Positions 6,300-64,000 are shown, counted from the first letter of the stretch. The stretch is 64,000 nt of DNA from Basidiobolus meristosporus CBS 931.73 (GCA_002104905.1 MCFE01000139.1:93455-157454); one strand, 5' to 3'. Program-made: numbers and translations. Notes: generated from the letters alone by a model not told the origin.

Positions 6300-7400
6300 T
6301 TTCTCTTTTGGTGGTCATCATTGCCATCAGGGTATTTTCATATTCCTCCTTGTTAGAGCTTAATCTCTAACTTTCTGCCCATGAGCCTTCCACACATGTA
6401 GTTTTAGGCCAAATTCTCAGTGGTAGATAAAAGACACAATACAGGACCCTGATGCTCCTCTGTCAGGTTATTCAGGAAGGTACCCATTACATCCTCATTA
6501 GTGATCTCTGTGCCAGCCTATATCATCTCATTAGCAAAGGTAGTTCAACTAGTTAAATTTCTTATTTCTCCTCCTGGTAGCATCTTTTTTGCACATAATA
6601 TTTGCTTTGAATATATCTATTTGCAGCTAAGTGTGACCAGCAGGTCTCTTCTCATGCCATTCCGGCCAATTGAGGAGGCTCCTGAACCAAGAATTTACAT
6701 AGTAATGTGCCTTTAACATTAGAGCAAATTTAGTTAAAGCACCTTGGCTCTTTTTGCTGGTACCCCAGGGCTCCTGCTTCTTAGTCCTTAGGATGGCCTT
6801 CCCCTGCCATAGTAAAGCTCTAAAAGCCTCTGTGCTATAGCATATTAGTTGTTAGCACCTTCTAAGCTCTGAAGTAAGATTTAATGAGCTTCTTGGTAGA
6901 AGGAAAGAGTTTAGTAATTGCAATAGTGGACATCCCTAAGAATGGCAACTTGAGACGTTTGTCATGTTGGAAGAGCATTCAAGATGTTGGAAGTGATTGG
7001 GAGTTTTGTAAAATTTCTGGTAGCTCATGAGCACTTGCCTAACTAGGTCACTAGATCTCTACTTGCAAAGATTTGAGACTCCTGATCAAACTCCTTGCTA
7101 AGATTTACTTGGGGCATTATTACCAAGTGATATGGTATCAAGAATGTGATTTTGCTACTTCTGCATCCATCAAATGATTGAGCAAAAGCTATAAAATCTG
7201 CTTGTTCTCTGTTTTGCTACCAATATCTCTAAAACTGCTACAATAAGCTGTAAGCCCCATGCTGACACTCTTCAGAAAGCGTACTGGTCTACTACTAGAA
7301 TTTTGACTCAGCTGAAGTGTTATATGGATCTAGCTATCCACTTTAGTAGGTAAAGACCTCTCTCTAGCATTACTGGGTTGTGATGGTGTTTTGCAGATCA
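6300..7400 (-). mobile_element. Highly decayed Ty3/gypsy pol (RT) relic
   Basis: Manual translation near 7200-6900 gives KITFLIPYHL..VIMPQ and FASRDLVT, resembling gypsy RT motifs; many stops. Confidence 0.4.
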
Positions 7401-26722: not shown

Positions 26723-29311
26723 TTAGGGTAGACGGCAGGGCTTGATGTTCCAGATGGAGTCGGCATATTCCTTGATGGCACGGTCCGAGGAGAACTTCGC
26801 CATTCCTGCTGTGCACATAATTGACATCTTGGCCCAGCTCTCCTTGTTCTTGTAGGCGACATCAACCCTGGCCTGAGCTTCCAAGTACGTGCGGAAGTCC
26901 ACCGAGACGAGGTAGACATCTCCGCCGTTCTGAAGAGTGTACAGCAGGGGGGCGAAGATGTTGGGGTCCCCGAAGACGCCGGAATAGATGATGTCCAGGA
27001 CATTCTGGAGTTTAGGATCCATGGGCAGCTTGCGATATCTGATGGCGTGTCGGAGGTCATCCACCTCGTGAGCAAGAACCCCAAAAGTGAAGATGTTCTC
27101 GTCGCCGATCTCCTCATTGATCTCGATGTTGGCGCCATCGACGGTGCCGAGGATGATACCTCCGTTCAACACGAATTTCATGTTGGAGGTACCGGAAGCT
27201 TCAGTACCTGCAGTGGAGATATGCTGGGAGATGTCACTGGCAGGGATGATGACTTCAGCAATGGAGACGTTGTAATCAGGAATAAAGACCACCTTCAACA
27301 AGTCGCCGATCTCCTTGTCGGCATTGACCACATCCGCAACACTATTGATGAGCTTGATGACCAGCTTGGCCACATAGTATCCAGGGGCAGCCTTTCCGCC
27401 AAAGATGACCACTCGGGAGACTTGCTTCTCTCTCTCGGCCTTGCTCATGGCTTTAAGAGAGGAGTAGCGGTAGATCACACTGAGGATGTTCATGTACTGA
27501 CGTTTGTACTCGTGGATACGCTTAACCTGGACATCGAACATCGCCTCCGGGTTCACCTTCACACCACAGCGCTCCTCAATATGTTTGGCCAATCTCTCCT
27601 TGTTCTTCTTCTTGACATCCATCCATTCCTTCTGGAACGCTTTGTCGCTGGCGAACTTCTTCAGCTTGGCAAGTTCGGTGAGTTTAGTGGTCCATTGATC
27701 ACTGCCAAGCTTTTTGGTGATGAGGTCGCTGAGAAGGGGGTTACATTGATGCAACCATCTTCTCGGGGTGACCCCGTTGGTCTTGTTCTCGAAACGCTTG
27801 GGCCCGTAGAAGTCGACAAAGTCCTTGAAGATGGTCTTTTGAATCAAGTCCGAGTGGAGCGCCGCCACTCCGTTTACCCGGTGGGAACCGACGATGGCGA
27901 GATGGGCCATGCGGACGTTCTGCGGCTGGGATTCCTCAATGATGGAGATGCGGTTTAGGAGGTCTCGGTCGCCTGGCTTTGTTTTCTCAACCTTCTGCAG
28001 GAAGAACAAATTAAGGTCGTAGATGATCATCATGTGTCTGGGTAGCACGTGCTCCAACATGGGTACCGACCATTTCTCCATGGCTTCAGGAAGAATGGTA
28101 TGGTTGGTGAAGGCGAAGGTACGGGTTACGATGTCCCAGGCCTCATCCCACTCCAGACCTTCCTCATCGATGAGGACACGTTGCAACTCCGGAATCCCGA
28201 GCGTTGGGTGAGTGTCGTTAAGCTGGATGGCCACCTGCTCAGGGAATTCCTTCCAGGGGCGCTTGGTCTTCTTGAAACGACGGATGATGTCGTAGAGAGT
28301 GGCACACACGAAGAAGTACTCCTGCTTGAGACGCAGCTCCTTTCCAACCATGTGGTTATCGTTGGGATACAACACCGAGGTGATATTCTCGGCGGATTTC
28401 TGCTCACCAACGGATTTATCGTAGTTGCCCTCATTGAAACTCTCGAGATCGAAGCTCTTCTTGGGCTTGCTGCTCCACAGACGGATGTTGATGCAATTCT
28501 TGGTATCGTATCCGGGGATAGGGATGTCGTAGGCGACAGCCTGAACGATTTGTCCACCCTCCCAGGTGTACTTCGTGTTCCCTTTGCTGTCGTAGTTCTT
28601 ATCAACATACCCGTAGAACCGGACCTCCACCGAAATGTCTAGGCGAGGAAGCTCCCAGGGGTTTCCATAGTTGAGCCAGTAATCTGGAACCTCGGTTTGG
28701 AATCCGTCGACGATCTTCTGTTGGAACATGCCGTAGTTATACCGGATTCCGTATCCCCAGGCTGGGTAATCCAGAGTAGCTAAGGAGTCCATGTAGCAGG
28801 CGGCTAGACGCCCGAGACCACCGTTTCCGAGGGCCGCGTCTTTCTCCTCCTCGATGAGATCTTCCATGGTGAAGCCGAGCTGCTTAACACCTTTATTGTA
28901 GTTTTCCTTCAAGCCAAGTGCCAACAGGGCGTTGTCCAGGGAACGACCGATCAGGAATTCCATAGAGAGGTAGTACACCCGCTTGGGATCGTTGGCAGTA
29001 TGGTATTCTTGAGTCTCGTTCCAACGTTTGATTAATCGATCGCGGACCGAGTGCGCAGTGGCAAGATACCCGGCAAAATCGTCCACATTGAATGGGGTTC
29101 TGGCCAAGGTGGTGGCCATATGACGAGCGATGGAGGTTTGGATGGAGGTGACATCTGGCTCATCAAGCTCGATCAGTTTCTGCCATAGCTTGGTCTCCTC
29201 TTCAGTGAACTTCTTTCTGGTATCTTGGTCCTTCGATTGGATCGTAGGAAGAGGAAGAACTGTCGAGCTTCTTCTTCTGGGTCTGGGTCTTTCGGGAGCA
29301 CTGGTGTTCAT
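26723..29311 (-). CDS. GPH1: Glycogen phosphorylase (862 aa, single exon)
   Basis: [39 protein letters not shown] (PLP-site region), [10 protein letters not shown]; full-length open ORF. Confidence 0.97.
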
Positions 29312-55098: not shown

Positions 55099-55784
55099 TG
55101 TTGTAAGAGTCTTGGAGATATTGGAAGTGAATGGGAGGACAAGTAGATTGTGTGGTTTTCACTTAATGATTTATTGAATGTAGAAGTAGTATTTATACTT
55201 TTACCTGGTCTTGGCATAACAAACATGTAGAATAGATTAAGGAAGGTCCCAAGAACATGTGTGCAAAGTTTGGGGCTGTATGGACAACTTTGAGAATTTT
55301 TATGTTCTGGGTACCTGGTATTTTGGTGAAAATAATCTGAGTAAATCCCAACAAGGAATTTGGTCAGTATTCTCTAGAATTTGAGGGTAATGATTTAAGT
55401 GACCAAGTTAGGGGAATATTTAGGTGGAATTACAAACTTCTTACAACACTCCCACTCAGCTAAATGTTCACACTGACTAGTCCTAATTTAGACCTAAAAT
55501 ATTCAAACTTGACTCTAGCTAATGGTTTGGTGAACATGTCAACAATCATTTCATCTGTAGGACAGTAAACTAAGATAACTAAGTTATTCTCTATAGCTTC
55601 ACATATGAAATGGTGTCTAATATCTATGTGCTTGGTTCTAGCATGAAAAGTTGGATTTCTACCTAATTGTATACATCCTTGATTATCGTGAAATAAAGTA
55701 ATAGGTGTTTTTTGACATAGGCCTAAATCTGTAAAAAGCTTTCTTAGCCACATTGCTTCTTTTGTAGCTTCACAGGCTGCCATA
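55099..55784 (-). mobile_element. Ty1/copia 3' end (RNaseH C-terminus 55783-55460, PPT, 350-bp LTR 55099-55448), truncated by the telomeric array
   Basis: ATKEAMWLRKL and HARTKHIDIRHHF; LTR with 9-bp terminal inverted repeats TGTTGTAAG...CTTACAACA. Confidence 0.88.
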
Positions 55785-56217
55785 GGGGAGGGAAAGTCAC
55801 CAAAGTAGGTGAAATCTTTATTTGATTTCAGACAAGTCTAACTACAAATAAAGAAGCCAGCTGGGAATAGAAGATTCCCAAAATAAACACTAAGTTGAAT
55901 ATGAATAAATCTAAGCTAAAGTTAAGGCAGTATCCCAGAGTACACTGGAGTTCAGGTTCATGGGGGAGTGAAGCAGATAAGCTTGAGAGATATAATAATC
56001 ATTTAAGAAGTGGGTAACAGCAGGTGAAGGGGAGTTTTTGATAAGTGAAGTGAATCTTGAGATCAGAGATTCCTCTAATGAGAAGGTTTAGTAAACTGGA
56101 GAATCAGGAAACTCTTTAAAGGCATGGTCAGTAGGTTCCCAGTAAAACTGGTCAGAGACATTTTGAGAGAATTGTTTAGCAATACTTTTGTCAAGTACAA
56201 CCTCCAGAGTGTGATGG
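55785..56217 (-). mobile_element. Class B telomeric element, 5'-truncated copy (B1)
   Basis: Near-identical to 62675-63107; begins with the G-run and shared 3' hairpins; truncated at GTGATGG. Confidence 0.9.
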
Positions 56218-56229
56218 GTTAGGGGTTTA

Positions 56230-57639
56230 GGGGGGAGACAGTCACCAACAGGTGAAATTTTTATTTCAGTTGAAACAAAGAAGCCAGCAATACTGTTGTA
56301 GCTTTGATACAAGAGTGTGTAGCTGAGGGGAATTTGTAGGTAAGTTAATAAGAAGTCATGATAGTTCTTCAGTGCTCAAGACACTGTTCAGTGGGAAGGG
56401 GGGTAGCAAGAGAGGTAAGAATGACTTGTGAACAACATTAATGAGGGGAATGTGATAAGGATTGATATTCATCATAAAGGGAGTGTGCTGCTGCAGATAT
56501 TGCTGCCAAAGGTCTGTCAAGTACTTCAGGTAGGCCAGCTTGGGTTTTTCTGACTGCAGAATATAGTGAGCAAACTTCTTGACTTCTGGATCTCCAAGTA
56601 GAGTTCTCCAGCAGGAGTCAGGTGTAGTGTGGTGTGTTCTCTTCCAGGCCTTAATCAGTGGGTTGTTGCAGTTGTGAAGTCTGAGGTATAATCTGGTTCT
56701 AAGGTAGAGAAGTCTGATCTTATAGGGCATAAACCCAAAAGCACCAAGAATAGCATGTCTGTAGGGGCATTCAGGCAAATGAGGCACCAAGGAGGTAATG
56801 CACCATACTGCAAACTTGTCAAGCTTAGTGCAGTCTCTAGAAGTAAGAGAGAGATGTGGTAAGCCAAATTCCAGGACAGGGAAGACAAACTGCTTGAGTA
56901 GAAGAAGGCAGCTGGGAGCTGAAGTTGTAGGAGGAGTAACAGTCAGTAGCTTGTGGAGTGCCTGTCTTGCCAGGATAATTCTCTTCTTCAGGTGTGCTCC
57001 AGAGTCTAGTCCAGTAGGAAAGAAAGGAAAGCCAAGATATGTAGCAGAAACCTGAGCAGGTAGAGTGGAGTTCTCCAAGTTGATGGGAGAGCCCAAAGGT
57101 ACTGTCTTTGCAATGGAAAGCTGGAGATTATTCTTCTGCAGATACTGGTGGATGGTCTGAGAGTCTTGTTGCACATTGGAGGAGGATATTCTGATGTCAT
57201 CAGCAAAGAGAGTAACCAGGCAGTCAGCTGAGAGTCTTGGGAAATCATTCAGGAAGATGGCAAACAGTATAGGACCAAGCACAGAGCCTTGAACCATCCC
57301 ATTAGGAACTGAGAACACAGCTAATTGCTCACTTGGGTGCAGAATTCTTGCTTGTGGATCCAGAAACAGAGACCTGACAAGGAGGGTGAGAGAGGTACTG
57401 GAGAAGCATTGCAACTTGGACCAAAGCAGATTTCTGTCAACTGAATCAAAGGCCTTAGTAATATCAAACAGAACAGAGGGATACTTGCACTGGAGAGAGT
57501 GATCTTGGCTAAGTATGACTGCATATTCCAAGGAGAGGCCAGGAACAAAGCCAAACTGTGCAGGATGAAACTTGAGGGAGTCAGAGTAGAGCTCCTGAGC
57601 AAGCAGAAGCTCAAACACCTTTCTGCAGGTGGGCAGCAG
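56230..57639 (-). mobile_element. Class A telomeric LINE, 5'-truncated copy (A1)
   Basis: RT C-terminal half near-identical to 59552-60961; premature TGA at 56356-56358. Confidence 0.92.
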
Positions 57640-57650
57640 GGTTAGGGTTA

Positions 57651-58172
57651 GGGGGGAGGAAAGTCACCAAGTGGTGAAATCTTTATTTACTTATGACAAG
57701 TATCCAAAGAAGCCATGTTAATCTGAAGTAATTCCTAGAGAGCTAGGTCTGAGAGATATCTTCCTGGTAAGCCAGGTCTGAGAGTTGAGAAGCTGAGTGG
57801 TACTGTATTTCCTAGTTAGCTAGGTCTGAGAGAGGTTTCCTGGAAAGCCAGGCCTGAGAAGTGAGAATCTGAGTATATCTGAGGTGAGTTGTACTGATTT
57901 GCGGTAGCTTGTTTGTGGCCAGAATGGCCAGTAGACTGGGGAAACTGAGCGGTATTCCTGGGCGATCACTGGCCAAATTTACTAGGCAAATCTGACCAAT
58001 TAGCATTTCAAGGATTTCAGCCAATCAGAGCCTTTACTTTGCCCAATGGTTGATCAAGCCATCTCCCAATGAGCACACATCAATTTATTAATCAAATTTT
58101 GCTGGATCCAGGATTTGAACCCACAACCATGGGTATGGAAGGGTTAGGGATAACCACAAGGCTAAGTGTTCT
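57651..58172 (-). mobile_element. Class C tRNA-derived SINE-like element, apparently full length (C1, ~520 bp)
   Basis: Minus-strand head GAACACT-TAGCCTTGTGG (A box)...GGTTCAAATCC (B box) at tRNA-like spacing; 3' end shared with classes A and B. Confidence 0.8.
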
Positions 58173-58178
58173 TGGTTA

Positions 58179-58692
58179 GGGGGAGACAGTCACCAACAGG
58201 TGAAATCTTTATTTCAGTTGAAGCAAAGAAGCCAGCGCTACTGTTGTAGCTTTGATACAAGAGTGTGTAGCTGAGGGGAATTTGTAGGTAAGTTAATAAG
58301 AAGTGATGATAGTTCTTCAGTGCTCAAGACACTGTTCAGTGGGAAGGGGGGTAGCAAGAGAGGTAAGAATGACTTGTGAACAACATTAATGAGGGGAATG
58401 TGATAAGGATTGATATTCATCATAAAGGGAGTGTGCTGCTGCAGATATTGCTGCCAAAGGTCTGTCAAGTACTTCAGGTAGGCCAGCTTGGGTTTTTCTG
58501 ACTGCAGAATATAGTGAGCAAACTTCTTGACTTCAGGATCTCCAAGTATAGTTCTCCAGCAGGAGCCAGGTGTTGTGTGGTGTGTTCTCTTCCATGCCTT
58601 AATCAGTGGGTTGTTGCAGTTGTGAAGTCTGAGGTATAATCTGGTTCTAAGGTAGAGAAGTCTGATCTTAAAGGGCATAAACCCAAAAGCAC
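58179..58692 (-). mobile_element. Class A telomeric LINE, short 3' fragment (A2)
   Basis: Matches 59552-60066; truncated at AAAGCAC, followed by TTAGGGTTAG. Confidence 0.92.
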
Positions 58693-58701
58693 TTAGGGTT
58701 A

Positions 58702-58922
58702 GGGGGGGGGGAGGAAAGTCACCAAGTGGTGAAATCTTTATTTACTTATGACAAGTATATAAGAAGCCAAGTTAATCTGAAGTTATTCCTAGAAAGCTAG
58801 GTCTGAGAGAGGTTTCCTGGAAAGCCAGGCCTGAGATGTGAGAATCTGAATATATCTGAGCTAAGTTATACTGGTTTGCGGTAGCTGAATTGTGGCCGGA
58901 ATGGCCAGTAGACTGGGGGAAC
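58702..58922 (-). mobile_element. Class C SINE-like element, 5'-truncated variant with two internal hairpin units (C2)
   Basis: Homologous to C1 but lacks two of the four CCT(A/G)G-N4-C(T/C)AGG units. Confidence 0.88.
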
Positions 58923-58931
58923 TTAGGGTTA

Positions 58932-59436
58932 GGGGAGGAAAGTCACCAAGTGGTGAAATCTTTATTTACTTATGACAAGTATTTAAAGAAGCCAAGTTAA
59001 TCTGAAGTAATTCCTAGAAAGCTAGGTCTGAGAGATATCTTCCTGGTAAGCCAGGTCTGAGAGTTGAGAAGCTGAGTGGTACTATATTTCCTAGTTAGCT
59101 AGGTCTGAGAGAGGTTTCCTGGAAAGCCAGGCCTGAGAAGTGAGAATCTGAGTATATCTGAGGTGAGTTGTACTGATTTGCGGTAGCTTGTTTGTGGCCA
59201 GAATGGCCAGTAGACTGGGGGAACTGAGGGGTATTTCTGGGCGATCACTGGCCAAATTTACTAGGCAAATTTGACCAATTAGCATTTCAAGGATTTCAGC
59301 CAATCAGAGCCTTTACTTTGCCCGATGGTTGATCAAGCCATCTCCCAATGAGCACACATCAATTTATTGATCAAATTTTGTTGGATCCAGGATTTGAACC
59401 CACAACCATGGGTATGGAAGGGTTAGGGATAACCAC
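58932..59436 (-). mobile_element. Class C SINE-like element lacking about 14 nt at the 5' end (C3)
   Basis: Near-identical to C1; retains the B box and the CCCTAACCC motif. Confidence 0.88.
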
Positions 59437-59445
59437 TTAGGGTTA

Positions 59446-59551
59446 GGGGGGAGGAAAGTCACCAAGTGGTGAAATCTTTATTTACTTATGACAAGTATCT
59501 AAAGAAGCCAAGTTAATCTGAAGTAATTCCTAGAAAGCTAGGTCTGAGAGA
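59446..59551 (-). mobile_element. Class C SINE-like element, short 3' fragment (C4)
   Basis: 3' 105 bp of class C; abuts the G-run of A3 with no TTAG spacer. Confidence 0.85.
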
Positions 59552-59611
59552 GGGGGGGAGATAGTCACCAACAGGTGAAATCTTTATTCAGTTGAAACAA
59601 AGAAGCCAGCG

Positions 59612-62365
59612 CTACTGTTGTAGCTTTGATACAAGAGTGTGTAGCTGAGGGGAATTTGTAGGTAAGTTAATAAGCAGTGATGATAGTTCTTCAGTGCTCA
59701 AGACACTGTTCAGTGGGAAGGGGGGTAGCAAGAGAGGTAAGAATGACTTGTGAACAACACTAATGAGGGGAATGTGATAAGGATTGATATTCATCATAAA
59801 GGGAGTGTGCTGCTGCAGATATTGCTGCCAAAGGTCTGTCAAGTACTTCAGGTAGGCCAGCTTGGGTTTTTCTGACTGCAGAATATAGTGAGCAAGCTTC
59901 TTGACTTCAGGATCTCCAAGTATAGTTCTCCAGCAGGAGTCAGGTGTTGTGTGGTGTGTTCTCTTCCAGGCCTTAATCAGTGGGTTGTTGCAGTTGTGAA
60001 GTCTGAGGTATAATCTGGTTCTAAGGTAGAGAAGTCTGATCTTATAGGGCATAAACCCAAAAGCACCAAGAATAGCATGTCTGTAGGGGCATTCAGGCAA
60101 ATGAGGCACCAAGGAGGTAATGCACCATACTGCAAACTTGTCAAGCTTAGTGCAGTCTCTAGAAGTAAGAGAGAGAAGTGGTAAGCCAAATTCCAGGACA
60201 GGGAAGACAAACTGCTTGAGTAGAAGGAGGCAGCTGGGAGCTGAAGTTGTAGGAGGAGTAACAGCCAGTAGCTTGTGGAGTGCCTGTCTTGCCAGGATAA
60301 TTCTCTTCTTCAGGTGTGCTCCAGAGTCTAGTCCAGTAGGAAGGAAAGGAAAGCCAAGATATGTAGCAGAAACCTGAGCAGGTAGAGTGGAGTTCTCCAA
60401 GTTGATGGGAGAGCCCAAAGGTACTGTCTTTGCAATGGAAAGCTGGAGATTATTCTTCTGCAGATACTGGTGGATGGTCTGGGAGTCTTGTTGCACATTG
60501 GAGGAGGATATTCTGATGTCATCAGCAAAGAGAGTAACCAGGCAGTCAGCTGAGAGTCTTGGGAAATCATTCAGGAAGATGGCAAACAGTATAGGACCAA
60601 GCACAGAGCCTTGAACCACACCATTAGGAACTGAGAAAACAGCTGATTGCTCACTTGGGTGCAGAATTCTTGCTTGTGGATCCAGAAACAGAGACCTGAC
60701 AAGGAGGGTGAGAGAGGTACTGGAGAAGCATTGCAACTTGGACCAAAGCAGATTTCTGTCAACTGAATCAAAGGCCTTAGTAATATCAAACAGAACAGAG
60801 GGATACTTGCACTGGAGAGAGTGATCTTGGCTAAGTATGACTGCATATTCCAAGGAGAGGCCAGGAACAAAGCCAAACTGTGCAGGATGAAACTTGAGGG
60901 AGTCAGAGGAGAGCTCCTGAGCAAGCAGAAGCTCAAACACCTTTCTGCAGGTGGGCAGCAGAGATATTGGCCTGTAGGAGCTAGGATCCAGGTGCTTTCC
61001 TTTACCCTTGTACAGTGGCAGAACATTTGCAAAGGACCATTCCTCAGGAGTAGAAAGCTGGGCTGAGCATTGCTGAAACAGTGGAAGCAGAAGTGCAGAC
61101 ATGGCCTTGGTACTAGTCTTCAGAAGCTCATAGGAGATTGTGTCCACACCTGGAGCAGTAGAGTTGGGAAGCCTCTTGAGCACATTATGGATTCTCCTTT
61201 GATCAAGTGCAAGTGGGATGGGCAGAGTCTTGAAGTCAGGATGAAAGCCAGGAGTTGAGTACTGCTTTGTAGAGAAGAAGATGTTAGCCAGCTGTTCTGT
61301 TGAAGGTAACTTCCTGGAAGAGGGCCTCATTGCCCTGTAGAGTCTTGATACTGTTCTTGTTATAGAGTTGGAAGATTGCAGAGGCAAGGAACTCATAATA
61401 TGATCCCAGAGCTGAGTATGCAGAGTGTGGTGAATTGCCTTGGAGTGGTGTATTGCTGTCAGGAGGAGTTTCTCTGTTTTTGGGTTAGGGAAGCTCAGGT
61501 AGCTTTGTTGCAGGGCTGAAACAATGGATTCCCATTTTCTTGAGGTAACAGCAGTAGTCTTGCATGGCAGTGAGAGGGAGGCAGACACCAGAATAAGATG
61601 CTTCACAAAGAGCCAGGCAAAGTTGAGATCATCTGGCAGAGAAAGTAGCAAACTGGCAAGCTTCAAGTAGTTCCCAAAGTCTTTCTTCTGATTCTTGGTA
61701 GCTTTGTGGGTGAGCACAGTAAGTTTTGGCAGCTTCTTCTTCACAACTGGTTGCATAGAAAGGGACCAGGCTGGGTGGTCAGAGGCTCTCAAGGATCCTA
61801 GCTCAGCTCCAGAGAATTGCTTAACTTCATTCACAAAGTAGAGGGCAGCAGCAGAAGGGCAGATCCAGTCAACACATCTTTTCTCAGATTGAGCACCTAG
61901 TGCTAGCAGGTGGCTTTCTCTCAGGAAGTTCAGTAGGAATGTAGACCTTGGCTTCATTCTTGCCGTCAGAGTAGTCTTGTTCTCAGGATGGGGAATGTTG
62001 AGATCTCCAAGCAAGATAACAGGTGTTGATATAGACTGTTGGTATTGCTGAACCTTCTGGCATATAACTTGCACTTCCTGAAGGGCTAGACTTGGAGGCA
62101 GATAGCAGAGCACCAGACTGATAGTTGGCAACTGGAGAGCAGCACAGTAAGGGGAGTAAAGAGGAACACAGAGCTGAGGAGTATTGATGGTAGAAGAGAT
62201 GAAGCAGATAGAGGAGGTATTCTTTGTTCTAGGAGTAGAAAAGCAATATAGATTAGTCAAAAGTATAGAGGGTAGCTGGACATCAATCAAACACAGGAGG
62301 GAAAATCTTGAAAGAAGTCTCTCTAGAGTTGGTCTTGATGGCTGTATGCTGTTGCAGTTAAGCAA
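59612..62365 (-). CDS. LINE ORF2: APE-type endonuclease + reverse transcriptase (~917 aa, intact, no AUG before the GDLN motif)
   Basis: Endonuclease: LNCNS, CYLPP, GDLN, VDWI, SDH. RT: APGVDTI, YRPISLL, QFGF, DITKAFDSV, GVVQGSVLGPILF, FADDI, YLGF. Confidence 0.95.
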   Translation of the reverse strand: MLNCNSIQPSRPTLERLLSRFSLLCLIDVQLPSILLTNLYCFSTPRTKNTSSICFISSTINTPQLCVPLYSPYCAALQLPTISLVLCYLPPSLALQEVQVICQKVQQYQQSISTPVILLGDLNIPHPENKTTLTARMKPRSTFLLNFLRESHLLALGAQSEKRCVDWICPSAAALYFVNEVKQFSGAELGSLRASDHPAWSLSMQPVVKKKLPKLTVLTHKATKNQKKDFGNYLKLASLLLSLPDDLNFAWLFVKHLILVSASLSLPCKTTAVTSRKWESIVSALQQSYLSFPNPKTEKLLLTAIHHSKAIHHTLHTQLWDHIMSSLPLQSSNSITRTVSRLYRAMRPSSRKLPSTEQLANIFFSTKQYSTPGFHPDFKTLPIPLALDQRRIHNVLKRLPNSTAPGVDTISYELLKTSTKAMSALLLPLFQQCSAQLSTPEEWSFANVLPLYKGKGKHLDPSSYRPISLLPTCRKVFELLLAQELSSDSLKFHPAQFGFVPGLSLEYAVILSQDHSLQCKYPSVLFDITKAFDSVDRNLLWSKLQCFSSTSLTLLVRSLFLDPQARILHPSEQSAVFSVPNGVVQGSVLGPILFAIFLNDFPRLSADCLVTLFADDIRISSSNVQQDSQTIHQYLQKNNLQLSIAKTVPLGSPINLENSTLPAQVSATYLGFPFLPTGLDSGAHLKKRIILARQALHKLLAVTPPTTSAPSCLLLLKQFVFPVLEFGLPLLSLTSRDCTKLDKFAVWCITSLVPHLPECPYRHAILGAFGFMPYKIRLLYLRTRLYLRLHNCNNPLIKAWKRTHHTTPDSCWRTILGDPEVKKLAHYILQSEKPKLAYLKYLTDLWQQYLQQHTPFMMNINPYHIPLISVVHKSFLPLLLPPFPLNSVLSTEELSSLLINLPTNSPQLHTLVSKLQQ

Positions 62366-62380
62366 CAGAACTTCAGGTAG

Positions 62381-62668
62381 TCAGGCAGAGGTTGTAGCTT
62401 CTTCAGAGGCAGCATTAACAATGTGACCTGCAGAGTCCCAGAGCTCTTCAAATGGTGCATCACCTAAGTCAGCAAGGAGGGAAATGGCATGGTTCTTGAG
62501 GAAGTATGCCACATCATAGGAGGGGGCTTGTCTCTTGATGGCAGCAAAGAAAGACAGAATGGCAACATGGGCTGGAGGCTTGTTGAACAGTAGAGAGTCA
62601 GAGGATTCAGATTCTTCAGGCACTATCTTGAAGTCAGTTTTCAGCCAGTTAAGGTTCTTCTCCACAAA
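62381..62668 (-). CDS. C-terminal ~95 aa of class A ORF1 (5'-truncated by the telomeric spacer)
   Basis: Open up to the TAA contributed by the CCCTAA spacer; no AUG; aligns to the C-terminus of the class B protein. Confidence 0.75.
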   Translation of the reverse strand, partial: FVEKNLNWLKTDFKIVPEESESSDSLLFNKPPAHVAILSFFAAIKRQAPSYDVAYFLKNHAISLLADLGDAPFEELWDSAGHIVNAASEEATTSA

Positions 62669-62800
62669 GGGTTAGGGGAGGGAAAGTCACCAAAGTAGGT
62701 GAAATCTTTATTTGATTTCAGACAAGTCTAACTACAAATAAAGAAGCCAGCTGGGAATAGAAGATTCCCAAAGTAAACACTAAGTTGAATATGAATAAAT

Positions 62801-63529
62801 CTAAGCTAAAGTTAAGGCAGTATCCCAGAGTACACTGGAGTTCAGGTTCATGGGGGAGTGAAGTAGATAAGCTTGAGAGATATAATAATCTTTGAGGAAG
62901 TGGGTAACAGCAGGTGAAGGGGAGTTTTTGATAAGTGAAGTGAATCTTGAGATCAGAGATTCCTCTAATGAGAAGGTCTTGTAAACTGGAGAATCAGGAA
63001 ACTCTTTGAAGGCATGGTCAGTAGGTTCCCAGTAAAACTGGTCAGAGACATTTTGAGAGAATTGATTAGCAATACTTTTGTCAAGTACTACCTCCAGAGT
63101 GTGATGGTTGATAAATCTCATGTTAACAATCTTGGATAAATTGTAACCTTGTTGCTTGAGATACATCCTATGCTCAGATATAGGAATAAACTCTACATTG
63201 GCAAAGTAGCAGACAGCCCAGTCAGTAGCAGGAGGCAAATCAGAAGTGGCAGGAAACTTTCTTTTGGTCTTGGGAGGAGCAGCAGGATGTCTTGAGGAAG
63301 CAGGAACAGACTTTTTGACAACTTCAGAGTAGGAAGAGTGAGCAGGAGCAGATGATTCTTGGGGAGTCTTGTTGGCAGGAAGAGTTGGCACAGGGACAAT
63401 AGATTCTTGCAGATCAGAGAAGGCAGAAAAGAGCTTTTGAACTTGTTTCTTGAGTAGAGCATTTTCAGCTTCAACAAGTGCAAGCCTTTCCTCAAGGAAA
63501 GAAATCTGAAGGGAATGGAGTGAAGGCAT
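62801..63529 (-). CDS. ORF1/Gag-like protein (242 aa from ATG 63529): N-terminal coiled coil, Pro/Ser linker with SYSEVVKK, C-terminal domain
   Basis: LEERLALVEAENALLKKQVQKL heptads; SYSEV motif as seen in many LINE ORF1 proteins; C-terminus homologous to class A ORF1. Confidence 0.75.
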   Translation of the reverse strand: MPSLHSLQISFLEERLALVEAENALLKKQVQKLFSAFSDLQESIVPVPTLPANKTPQESSAPAHSSYSEVVKKSVPASSRHPAAPPKTKRKFPATSDLPPATDWAVCYFANVEFIPISEHRMYLKQQGYNLSKIVNMRFINHHTLEVVLDKSIANQFSQNVSDQFYWEPTDHAFKEFPDSPVYKTFSLEESLISRFTSLIKNSPSPAVTHFLKDYYISQAYLLHSPMNLNSSVLWDTALTLA

Positions 63530-63570
63530 AAGAAATAAGAAGAAGAGGGTAAGATGGGGTGGGTGGGTGG

Positions 63571-63786
63571 GAAAATTAGCAGGGAGAAGAGAAGGAAGGA
63601 GCAAAAATTCCAGAAGTCAGAATTTATAGATGGATGGACAAGGGTAGGTGGATGGATTATTCCTGGGTTAGGAAAATTAGCAGGGAGAAGAGAAGGAAGG
63701 AGCAAAAATTCCAGAAGTCAGAATTTATAGATGGATGGACAAGGGTAGGTGGATGGATTATTCCTGGGTTAGGAAAATTAGCAGGG
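63571..63786 (-). repeat. 101-bp tandem repeat (2 full copies plus 14 bp), each 94 bp + GGGTTAG, containing a minus-strand TATAAA
   Basis: Units start GAAAATTAGCAGGG at 63571, 63672 and 63773; TTTATA at 63622-63627 and 63723-63728. Confidence 0.92.
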
Positions 63787-64000
63787 TTAGGGTTAGGGTT
63801 AGGGTTAGGGTTAGGGTTAGGGTTAGGGTTAGGGTTAGGGTTAGGGTTAGGGTTAGGGTTAGGGTTAGGGTTAGGGTTAGGGTTAGGGTTAGGGTTAGGG
63901 TTAGGGTTAGGGTTAGGGTTAGGGTTAGGGTTAGGGTTAGGGTTAGGGTTAGGGTTAGGGTTAGGGTTAGGGTTAGGGTTAGGGTTAGGGTTAGGGTTAG
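63784..64000 (+). repeat. Telomere (TTAGGG)n, about 35 perfect repeats to the end of the window
   Basis: Uninterrupted TTAGGG tract with the G-rich strand running 5'->3' toward the end. Confidence 0.99.

Follow-up and report, generated by a model that had tools for sequence, protein, structure and literature searches.

The distal end of the DNA stretch analysed here carries an array of retroelements that runs into terminal TTAGGG repeats, and we consider it probable that these elements form a telomere-dedicated family of non-LTR (non-long-terminal-repeat) retrotransposons, in which an autonomous element, termed A, and non-autonomous partners are added at chromosome termini. The stretch, hereafter called the window, comprises 64,000 nucleotides of Basidiobolus meristosporus CBS 931.73 and represents the right-hand end of a 157,454-bp contig (G000:C412:93455-157454). 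Refinement of the insert boundaries with BLAST and by eye bore out the nine inserts that an initial annotation had described in the order B-A-C-A-C-C-C-A-B between positions 55785 and 63786. In all nine, the minus strand is the sense strand, the elements run antisense to the terminal (TTAGGG)n and the intact 3' ends face inward; the 5' ends of most are truncated. The spacers between the inserts consist of 0-14 nt of telomeric repeat, in agreement with the mostly short TTAGGG spacers of that annotation.

The array begins with B1 (55785-56216), the 5'-truncated 3' 432 bp of family B with 97.7% identity to the outermost copy B2 in BLAST and with the loop AAAGTA in its tail motif. It is followed by A1 (56230-57639), the 5'-truncated 3' 1.4 kb of A, a long interspersed nuclear element (LINE), which has 98.4% identity to A3 and retains a 420-aa open reading frame (ORF) fragment. 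Next lies C1 (57651-58173), a full-length copy of about 520 nt of the non-coding element C, which resembles a short interspersed nuclear element (SINE), with the 5' terminus AAGAAC and a 76-bp internal duplication. BLAST further delimits A2 (58179-58692), the 3' 514 bp of A, and C2 (58702-58922), a 5'-truncated C without one 76-bp unit. C3 (58932-59436) lacks about 17 nt at its 5' end, as judged by 5'-end comparison, and C4 (59446-59551), the 3' 106 nt of C, abuts A3 with no telomeric unit between them. A3 itself (59552-62668) spans 3.1 kb and is covered at 98-99% identity by 41 other genomic copies. Here the initial annotation required correction, since this copy is 5'-truncated within ORF1 and is without about 1.5 kb, namely the 5' untranslated region (UTR) and most of ORF1. 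The outermost insert, B2 (62675-63786), is a complete ORF1-only element directly under the telomere cap, a plus-strand tract of at least 35 perfect TTAGGG units (63787-64000) that reaches the contig end. In the window, TTAGGGTTAGGG has 38 matches, against 0 expected. The GC skew of the plus strand amounts to +0.22 to +0.42 within the array; over the whole part of the window from 54 kb onward it takes values between +0.19 and +0.42, as against -0.19 to +0.12 elsewhere, a rise which indicates that the antisense strand of the elements continues the G-rich telomere strand. Such a strand composition has been described for other telomeric retrotransposons (PMC10088271; compare PMC5537684).

The common tail motif of the elements, GTCACC-N4-6-GGTGAAAT, occurs 1558 times on the plus and 145 times on the minus strand of the 89.5-Mb genome, as against 2 and 1 times for a reversed control pattern. 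Among the first 100 listed tail matches, 40 of the contigs C1-C91 carry the tail, none of them in mixed orientation. In all 40 contigs checked the tails lie at most about 22 kb from a contig end with their 3' ends inward, which agrees with the expectation of the initial annotation that A, B and C would stand next to TTAGGG in a single polarity. As an internal control for the pattern of a dispersed element in the same assembly we used a Copia family, the 1416-aa ORF of which is found dispersed at internal genomic sites and in balance on both strands. Eight further ends that were examined in full contain A, B and C in differing orders and with differing truncation points, and any of A, B and C can occupy the terminal position, either as a complete or as a truncated copy. 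Hence, the order varies between ends and is not identical, the latter being what the initial annotation had named as a sign of segmental duplication. Arrays of up to about 22 kb thus appear to be present at hundreds of ends. The plus strand holds 91% of the tail motifs (1558/1703), and the Copia control is strand-balanced; the arrays therefore lie almost always at the right contig end, a bias that is probably an assembler convention. The genome also contains an exon encoding the TERT RNA-binding domain (44 bits against a cut-off of 25), a check for which had been proposed, and B. meristosporus thus appears from its sequence to have telomerase.

Element A is the only one of the three classes for which we found the enzymatic equipment of a retrotransposon, and the earlier assignment of reverse transcriptase (RT) and endonuclease (EN) to class A holds: B and C encode no reverse transcriptase. 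In A3, ORF2 is intact with 922 codons (59615-62380, stop codon at 59612-59614). Its RT core (60347-60985) matches Pfam RVT_1 with an E-value of 1.7e-25 and 90 bits (cut-off 29.6), and among solved structures human L1 ORF2p matches it best (E 5.8e-13), R2 reaching only 0.09. An atlas search likewise placed A in the class that combines EN and RT, with LINE ORF2 proteins as the best RT matches. While the N-terminal approximately 235 residues (61676-62380) gave Pfam endonuclease matches below the cut-off, an AlphaFold2 (AF2) model of this part (predicted local distance difference test score, pLDDT, 75.7) was matched by Foldseek to ExoA, APE1, L1 EN and TRAS1 EN with a probability of 1.0 and E-values of 4e-10 to 1e-8. 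Residues N8, Y93, D126/N128, D171 and S200-D201-H202 are invariant among relatives, and the usual catalytic glutamate is replaced by a conserved aspartate, D33. Judged by this model, ORF2 looks to carry an APE-fold endonuclease with conserved catalytic motifs that is predicted to function. In the C-terminal part of ORF2, Pfam returned no domain, so no restriction-enzyme-like endonuclease was seen there. Altogether, its LINE-type RT, its N-terminal EN, its 3'-intact and 5'-truncated copies and the absence of LTRs characterise A, on the sequence level, as an APE-type non-LTR retrotransposon.

Six of the seven ORF2 copies examined are intact and share 99.1-99.6% identity; the seventh contains one single-base indel. 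The synonymous share among the intact copies is 0.43 against 0.24 expected (p=0.003 in a crude test), by which the copies show the signature of purifying selection on ORF2. Close relatives of the A ORF2, with 47-80% identity, are confined to a few assemblies, and the best matches beyond them reach at most 31% identity over one third of the protein; with this drop, the lineage of A is isolated. Copies of A on other contigs extend about 1.0-1.5 kb further in the 5' direction than A3. The longest copy examined, at locus L011 (2200 to about 6780), measures about 4.58 kb and comprises a 5' UTR (about 520 nt), an ORF1 of about 357 aa counted from the first methionine, a single TGA and an in-frame ORF2 of 922 codons. 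Hence, complete A is about 4.6 kb or more in length. An internal AACCCTAACCC motif is present in the 5' UTR at a distance of about 165 nt from the longest 5' end observed (L011 about 6600-6780, L012 6540-6610), and one A copy is truncated just outside this motif, which renders the true full-length 5' end of A uncertain.

The arrangement of the two reading frames of A suggests how ORF2 may be expressed. The C-terminal 95 codons of ORF1 that alignment identifies in A3 (62384-62668), the remainder having been lost to 5' truncation, are separated from ORF2 by a single in-frame UGA (62381-62383) followed by CUA, and this junction is conserved in relatives. In A and four distinct relative elements with 47-63% ORF2 identity, ORF1 ends with alanine and UGA, followed by CUA or CUC, and the conserved start of the endonuclease (LLLNC...) lies 3-5 codons past the UGA in the same frame. 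An ATG at the start of ORF2 is present in just one of the four distinct relatives. UGA-CUA is a known leaky context. This suggests that ORF2 may be produced as an ORF1-ORF2 fusion by readthrough across UGA-CUA.

For ORF1, Pfam yielded weak matches of coiled-coil type, and nothing significant was returned for either ORF1 or the ORF of B. A model of the domain shared by both shows a beta-alpha-beta-beta-alpha-beta core plus helices and is RRM-like. Foldseek gave no match below 1e-3 for this model, and a VIA search returned a Prp24 RRM with Z 8.0, along with many other RRMs at about Z 6, values which are within the background range. A profile search for relatives of the domain, with candidates restricted to proteins of similar length sharing short words, found them in the same species only; the domain of A ORF1 has 99% identity to a hypothetical protein of B. 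meristosporus CBS 931.73. The ORF1 protein of related elements from other samples (L035 600-800, L037 1169-1350) starts with a Cys-rich CPNCG...C.C motif that may be a zinc finger, and the A element of B. meristosporus is without this motif.

Element B, of about 1.1 kb, encodes a protein of 242 aa (62804-63529 in B2), which contains a coiled coil as well as the conserved C-terminal domain of ORF1 and aligns with A ORF1 over both parts (30% identity, E 8e-23). B is thus a Gag-only derivative like HeT-A, and its earlier description as an ORF1-only partner is substantiated by this homology and by the lack of an encoded RT; the notion that the classes have unrelated bodies is wrong for B and A ORF1. 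Upstream of the ORF, TRF delimits tandem monomers of 101 bp (63570-63786), each with a TATAAA and a TAACCC unit, in 2.1 copies in B2 and 8.2 copies in another B element. On other contigs, at least ten B copies terminate at B position 1021 (63696 in the window), 33 nt downstream of the TATAAA at 63729-63724, and their neighbours vary between contigs and comprise B, C, another family or the telomere. A fixed end with varied neighbours fits a transcription start better than random truncation or one duplicated junction. The sequence of the monomers thus fits a putative 5' promoter with a start near position 1021.

The three classes of the initial annotation are all present, and more than three families exist. 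A second ORF1-only family of about 1 kb was identified at G000:C23:15700-16760 (L042), with the tail variant ATCACC-AAAG-GGTGAAAT. Beside this element lies a 36-nt stump of a further family (loop AAGTT), and the genome list contains additional tail loop variants (AAGGTA, AACT, ATTAT, AAAGCA and AAAGGA).

Element C is about 520 nt long, contains no ORF of note and has a 76-bp internal duplication. Three independent copies share the 5' end AAGAAC, and the head carries a box A-like TAGCCTTGTGG at +10, which is followed at +53, with tRNA-like spacing, by a perfect box B, GGTTCAAATCC. These features, together with its short, non-coding nature and the tail in common with LINE A, support C as a SINE-like element that would be of RNA polymerase III (Pol III) type by its motifs. 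The earlier label of a tRNA-SINE stands in its second part only: ARAGORN found no tRNA in C, and the Rfam tRNA model had no match across 8.1 kb at E<=1 nor in the 96-nt head of C at E<=10. As both tools were negative, we rejected a tRNA origin of C. Between box A and box B the head also holds a telomere-like unit, CCCTAACCC (58140-58150 and 59420-59430 in the window).

What joins these families is a 3' module of about 70 nt, present in all of them and in relatives from other samples, which corroborates and extends the shared 3' structure noted initially for A, B and C. The module comprises, in this order, a long hairpin with the 3' arm AAAUAAAGA, a 5-bp hairpin of the form UCACC-loop-GGUGA, a pyrimidine tract ending in a C-run, and telomeric units. 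Its stems are nearly invariant; one pair covaries, and changes that preserve the pairing are confined to the apex of the long hairpin. An AAUAAA in the tail was considered as a poly(A) signal and set aside, because this sequence makes up the 3' arm of the long hairpin and the inserts carry no copied poly(A).

At 39 junctions we counted one telomeric unit in 23 cases (TTA plus the G-run of the element), two units in 6, a partial unit in 5, none in 4 and six or more in 1, and at none of them an A/T run derived from poly(A). The junction type is alike in A, B and C, and the G-runs vary in length from 3 to 10. The longest internal telomeric tract measures 48 bp; terminal tracts measure 54-210 bp, and in loci that extend as far as the contig end they comprise 108-210 bp of perfect TTAGGG. 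From the inner to the outer inserts of the window, the identity to other genomic copies rises in all three families, for A1, A2 and A3 from 98.4 over 98.8 to 99.0%, for B1 and B2 from 96.4 to 97.8%, and for C1, C3 and C4 from 95.2 over 95.7 to 98.1%, a trend in keeping with successive additions on the distal side.

On its inner side, the array adjoins DNA of non-telomeric origin. The 107 aa encoded at 55460-55783 on the minus strand are the C-terminal end of the 1416-aa Copia-type polyprotein, in a local open frame of just 125 aa; Pfam reported nothing significant for this remnant. The Copia ORF is broken at 55784, and B1 is joined directly to it with no telomeric repeat at the junction. Hence, the innermost B is attached to a broken non-telomeric end, and the junction looks like a chromosome break healed by retroelement addition.

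We propose the following route for the growth of such arrays. A would produce an ORF1 protein that combines a coiled coil with an RRM-like domain and, probably by UGA-CUA readthrough, an ORF1-ORF2 fusion with EN and RT. Three kinds of RNA would carry the 3' module, i.e. the A RNA, the ORF1-only RNAs (B and at least one further family) and the Pol III-type C RNA, and the A reverse transcriptase is presumed to recognise this module. At the chromosome terminus, the G-rich strand would offer its 3'-OH as the primer for reverse transcription, so that each new copy would come to lie distal to the last, its 3' end pointing towards the interior and its 5' end away from it, and telomerase would cap the outermost 5' end with TTAGGG. 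The polarity of the arrays implies that first-strand cDNA continues the G-rich strand; priming from a G-strand 3'-OH fits this polarity, and both a natural end and an endonuclease nick are compatible with it. Most simply, the one or two telomeric units at the junctions would be the element RNA's own UAACCC-like tail, in which case additions would take place on ends with few or no repeats, whether eroded, broken or freshly extended. The short junctions with varying inner register and the attachment to non-telomeric DNA argue in the same direction, with the units coming from the RNA tail and the primer being a repeat-poor 3' end. From the common tail we infer that A may mobilise B and C in trans. 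Since full-length internal copies abut the next tail, some neighbours may also have arisen by template jumping in a single event.

Several points weigh against addition at chromosome termini as we propose it. Full-length internal copies such as C1 stand directly against the next tail, an arrangement for which erosion by itself fails to account, and a functional-looking endonuclease is unexpected if ends are extended without cleavage. Covariation in the 3' module is nearly absent, and the invariance of the stems leaves minimal covariation support for the hairpins. Transcript ends, readthrough and expression are putative. The variation of the G-runs may be due to slippage or PacBio homopolymer error. 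Finally, the position of the elements was checked in 40 contigs, and uncollapsed copies may have inflated the number of ends, for which extrapolation gives about 600 contigs.

The conservation of the endonuclease indicates that cleavage matters somewhere, and we thus keep as the main rival a site-specific insertion into duplex telomeric repeats in the manner of TRAS1/SART1, with a G-strand nick (e.g. TTA^GGG) near the base of the tract and the distal repeats being lost or re-made. The APE fold with catalytic motifs kept under selection, the presence of TRAS1 EN among the structural matches and the fact that nearly all junctions read as TTA plus the G-run of the element, as a TTA^GGG nick would give, all speak for such a mechanism. 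Random nicks in tracts of 100-210 bp, however, predict spacers of all lengths, whereas 38 of 39 spacers comprise at most two units with an internal maximum of 48 bp; moreover, the innermost B sits on broken Copia without telomeric repeat, four junctions are without any unit, and poly(A) is absent, whereas SART1 depends on a long poly(A) tail together with three or more repeats (PMC7265360). We therefore regard this mechanism as rather unlikely. It is far less probable that the arrays were spread mostly by recombination between ends, i.e. by break-induced replication or segmental duplication after few retrotranspositions. Identical junctions do recur across contigs, for instance a B monomer joined to a B tail in L004 and L010, and the copies are highly similar to one another; yet the ends vary in the order, truncation points and neighbours of their elements, the recurrent B 5' end at 1021 is found next to different sequences from contig to contig, every insert possesses its own 3' tail junction, and ORF2 copies are intact and bear the marks of purifying selection. 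We give almost no credence to the idea that contigs end in repeats merely because the assembler broke there and that the elements are not truly terminal. Many array-bearing contigs are just 10-30 kb long and the 91% of tails on the plus strand point to an assembler convention, but 108-210 bp of perfect TTAGGG follow the last element at contig ends, the orientation relative to the TTAGGG tract is constant, and no contig of mixed orientation is found among the first 100 listed tails.

Beyond the terminal addition that we favour, a more far-reaching function is conceivable, for which we can make a tentative case at best. The elements may constitute a second RNA-templated system for building or healing ends beside telomerase, in which broken or eroded ends, such as the Copia end at 55784, would be extended by LINE, Gag-only and SINE RNAs with telomere-mimic tails, perhaps by template jumping of several elements per event, and which would perhaps enable a karyotype of many small chromosomes. 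For Basidiobolus, 60 to many hundreds of small chromosomes are reported in the cytological literature cited in PMC3281927.

To place these elements, we compared them with characterized telomeric retrotransposons. Retrotransposons dedicated to telomeres have been described in flies, silkworm, Giardia, Chlorella and rotifers and, among fungi, in a few ascomycetes and basidiomycetes. The closest functional analogue is the HeT-A/TART/TAHRE system of Drosophila (Jockey clade). Both form one-way head-to-tail terminal arrays with 3' ends inward and variable 5' truncation, combine an RT element with a Gag-only partner, B relating to A as HeT-A does to TAHRE or TART, attach to broken ends and share a G-rich strand composition. 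Unlike Drosophila, B. meristosporus has a TERT RNA-binding-domain exon and TTAGGG caps, telomeric-unit junctions instead of oligo(A), a Pol III-type non-coding partner and, as suggested by sequence motifs, a promoter in 5' tandem monomers and not at the 3' end.

TRAS1 and SART1 of Bombyx (R1 clade) resemble A as LINEs with APE-type EN and RT that reside beside telomerase repeats, and the likeness to TRAS1 EN is a structural one of the predicted model. SART1 requires poly(A) and at least three repeats, and TRAS/SART insert at a fixed nucleotide inside long tracts (PMC7265360). In contrast, A is without poly(A), its spacers comprise 0-2 units and its arrays are directly stacked. With no A/T run at 39 junctions and spacers mostly of at most two units, an assignment of A to the TRAS/SART type fails.

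Among fungi, MoTeR1/MoTeR2, FoTeR and Cnl1 share with the elements described here TTAGGG hosts, flanking telomeric units and variable tandem repeats at the 5' end. To our knowledge, no SINE-like partner has been reported for them. MoTeR2 is a non-autonomous partner that shares its ends with MoTeR1 (PMC7367193, PMC12857005). In MoTeR, FoTeR and Cnl1, which fall into one group with CRE and SLACS, a restriction-enzyme-like endonuclease is found at the C-terminus (PMC12857005), whereas A has an N-terminal APE-fold EN and an L1-type ORF1/ORF2 layout. A was thus also rejected as a CRE-clade element, given its N-terminal APE fold and the lack of a C-terminal Pfam domain. The Athena/Terminon Penelope-like elements of bdelloid rotifers are found at chromosome ends in the orientation of G-overhang priming and with short 3' telomeric repeats (PMC10088271). 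Unlike Athena, which has no endonuclease and a Penelope/TERT-like RT, A possesses an APE endonuclease and a LINE RT nearest to L1 ORF2p; a classification of A as a Penelope-like element fails on the APE-fold EN and on the best RT matches, which are LINE ORF2 proteins.

Two further precedents concern single steps of the proposed route. In stringent-type pairs such as UnaL2/UnaSINE1 of eel, the non-autonomous RNA borrows the 3' stem-loop and short tail repeats of the LINE, and in endonuclease-independent insertion of L1 a deprotected chromosome end can prime LINE RT. Unlike in UnaL2/UnaSINE1, the tail repeat in B. meristosporus is the telomere unit, and chromosome ends are the only location of all partners. 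A 2023 survey of telomeric retrotransposons names nothing of this kind (PMC10088271), and our literature searches found no published description of such a system in Basidiobolus.

We have not found the features seen here reported together, i.e. a fungal APE LINE, tails of telomere units, HeT-A-like Gag-only partners and an end-restricted Pol III-type passenger in a host that apparently has telomerase. An early-diverging fungus that can be cultured would allow asking how retroelements and telomerase share the maintenance of ends. This could reveal whether the fly system stands apart or marks one extreme of a continuum, and it may bear on whether break healing by retroelements promotes extreme chromosome numbers. 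The conserved UGA-CUA stop, in addition, offers a testable case of LINE ORF2 expression via readthrough.

The remainder of the window includes two blocks of differing composition. Positions 1-26000 are AT-richer (GC 37-42%) and contain Copia gag/pol pieces (e.g. 1063-2211); they adjoin a GC-richer genic block at 26-52 kb. The fungal genes in the window include an Arg5,6-type fusion and a glycogen phosphorylase. The phosphorylase gene (26723-29311) has a 90%-identical paralogue on G000:C2, which fits extensive gene or genome duplication in Basidiobolus meristosporus.

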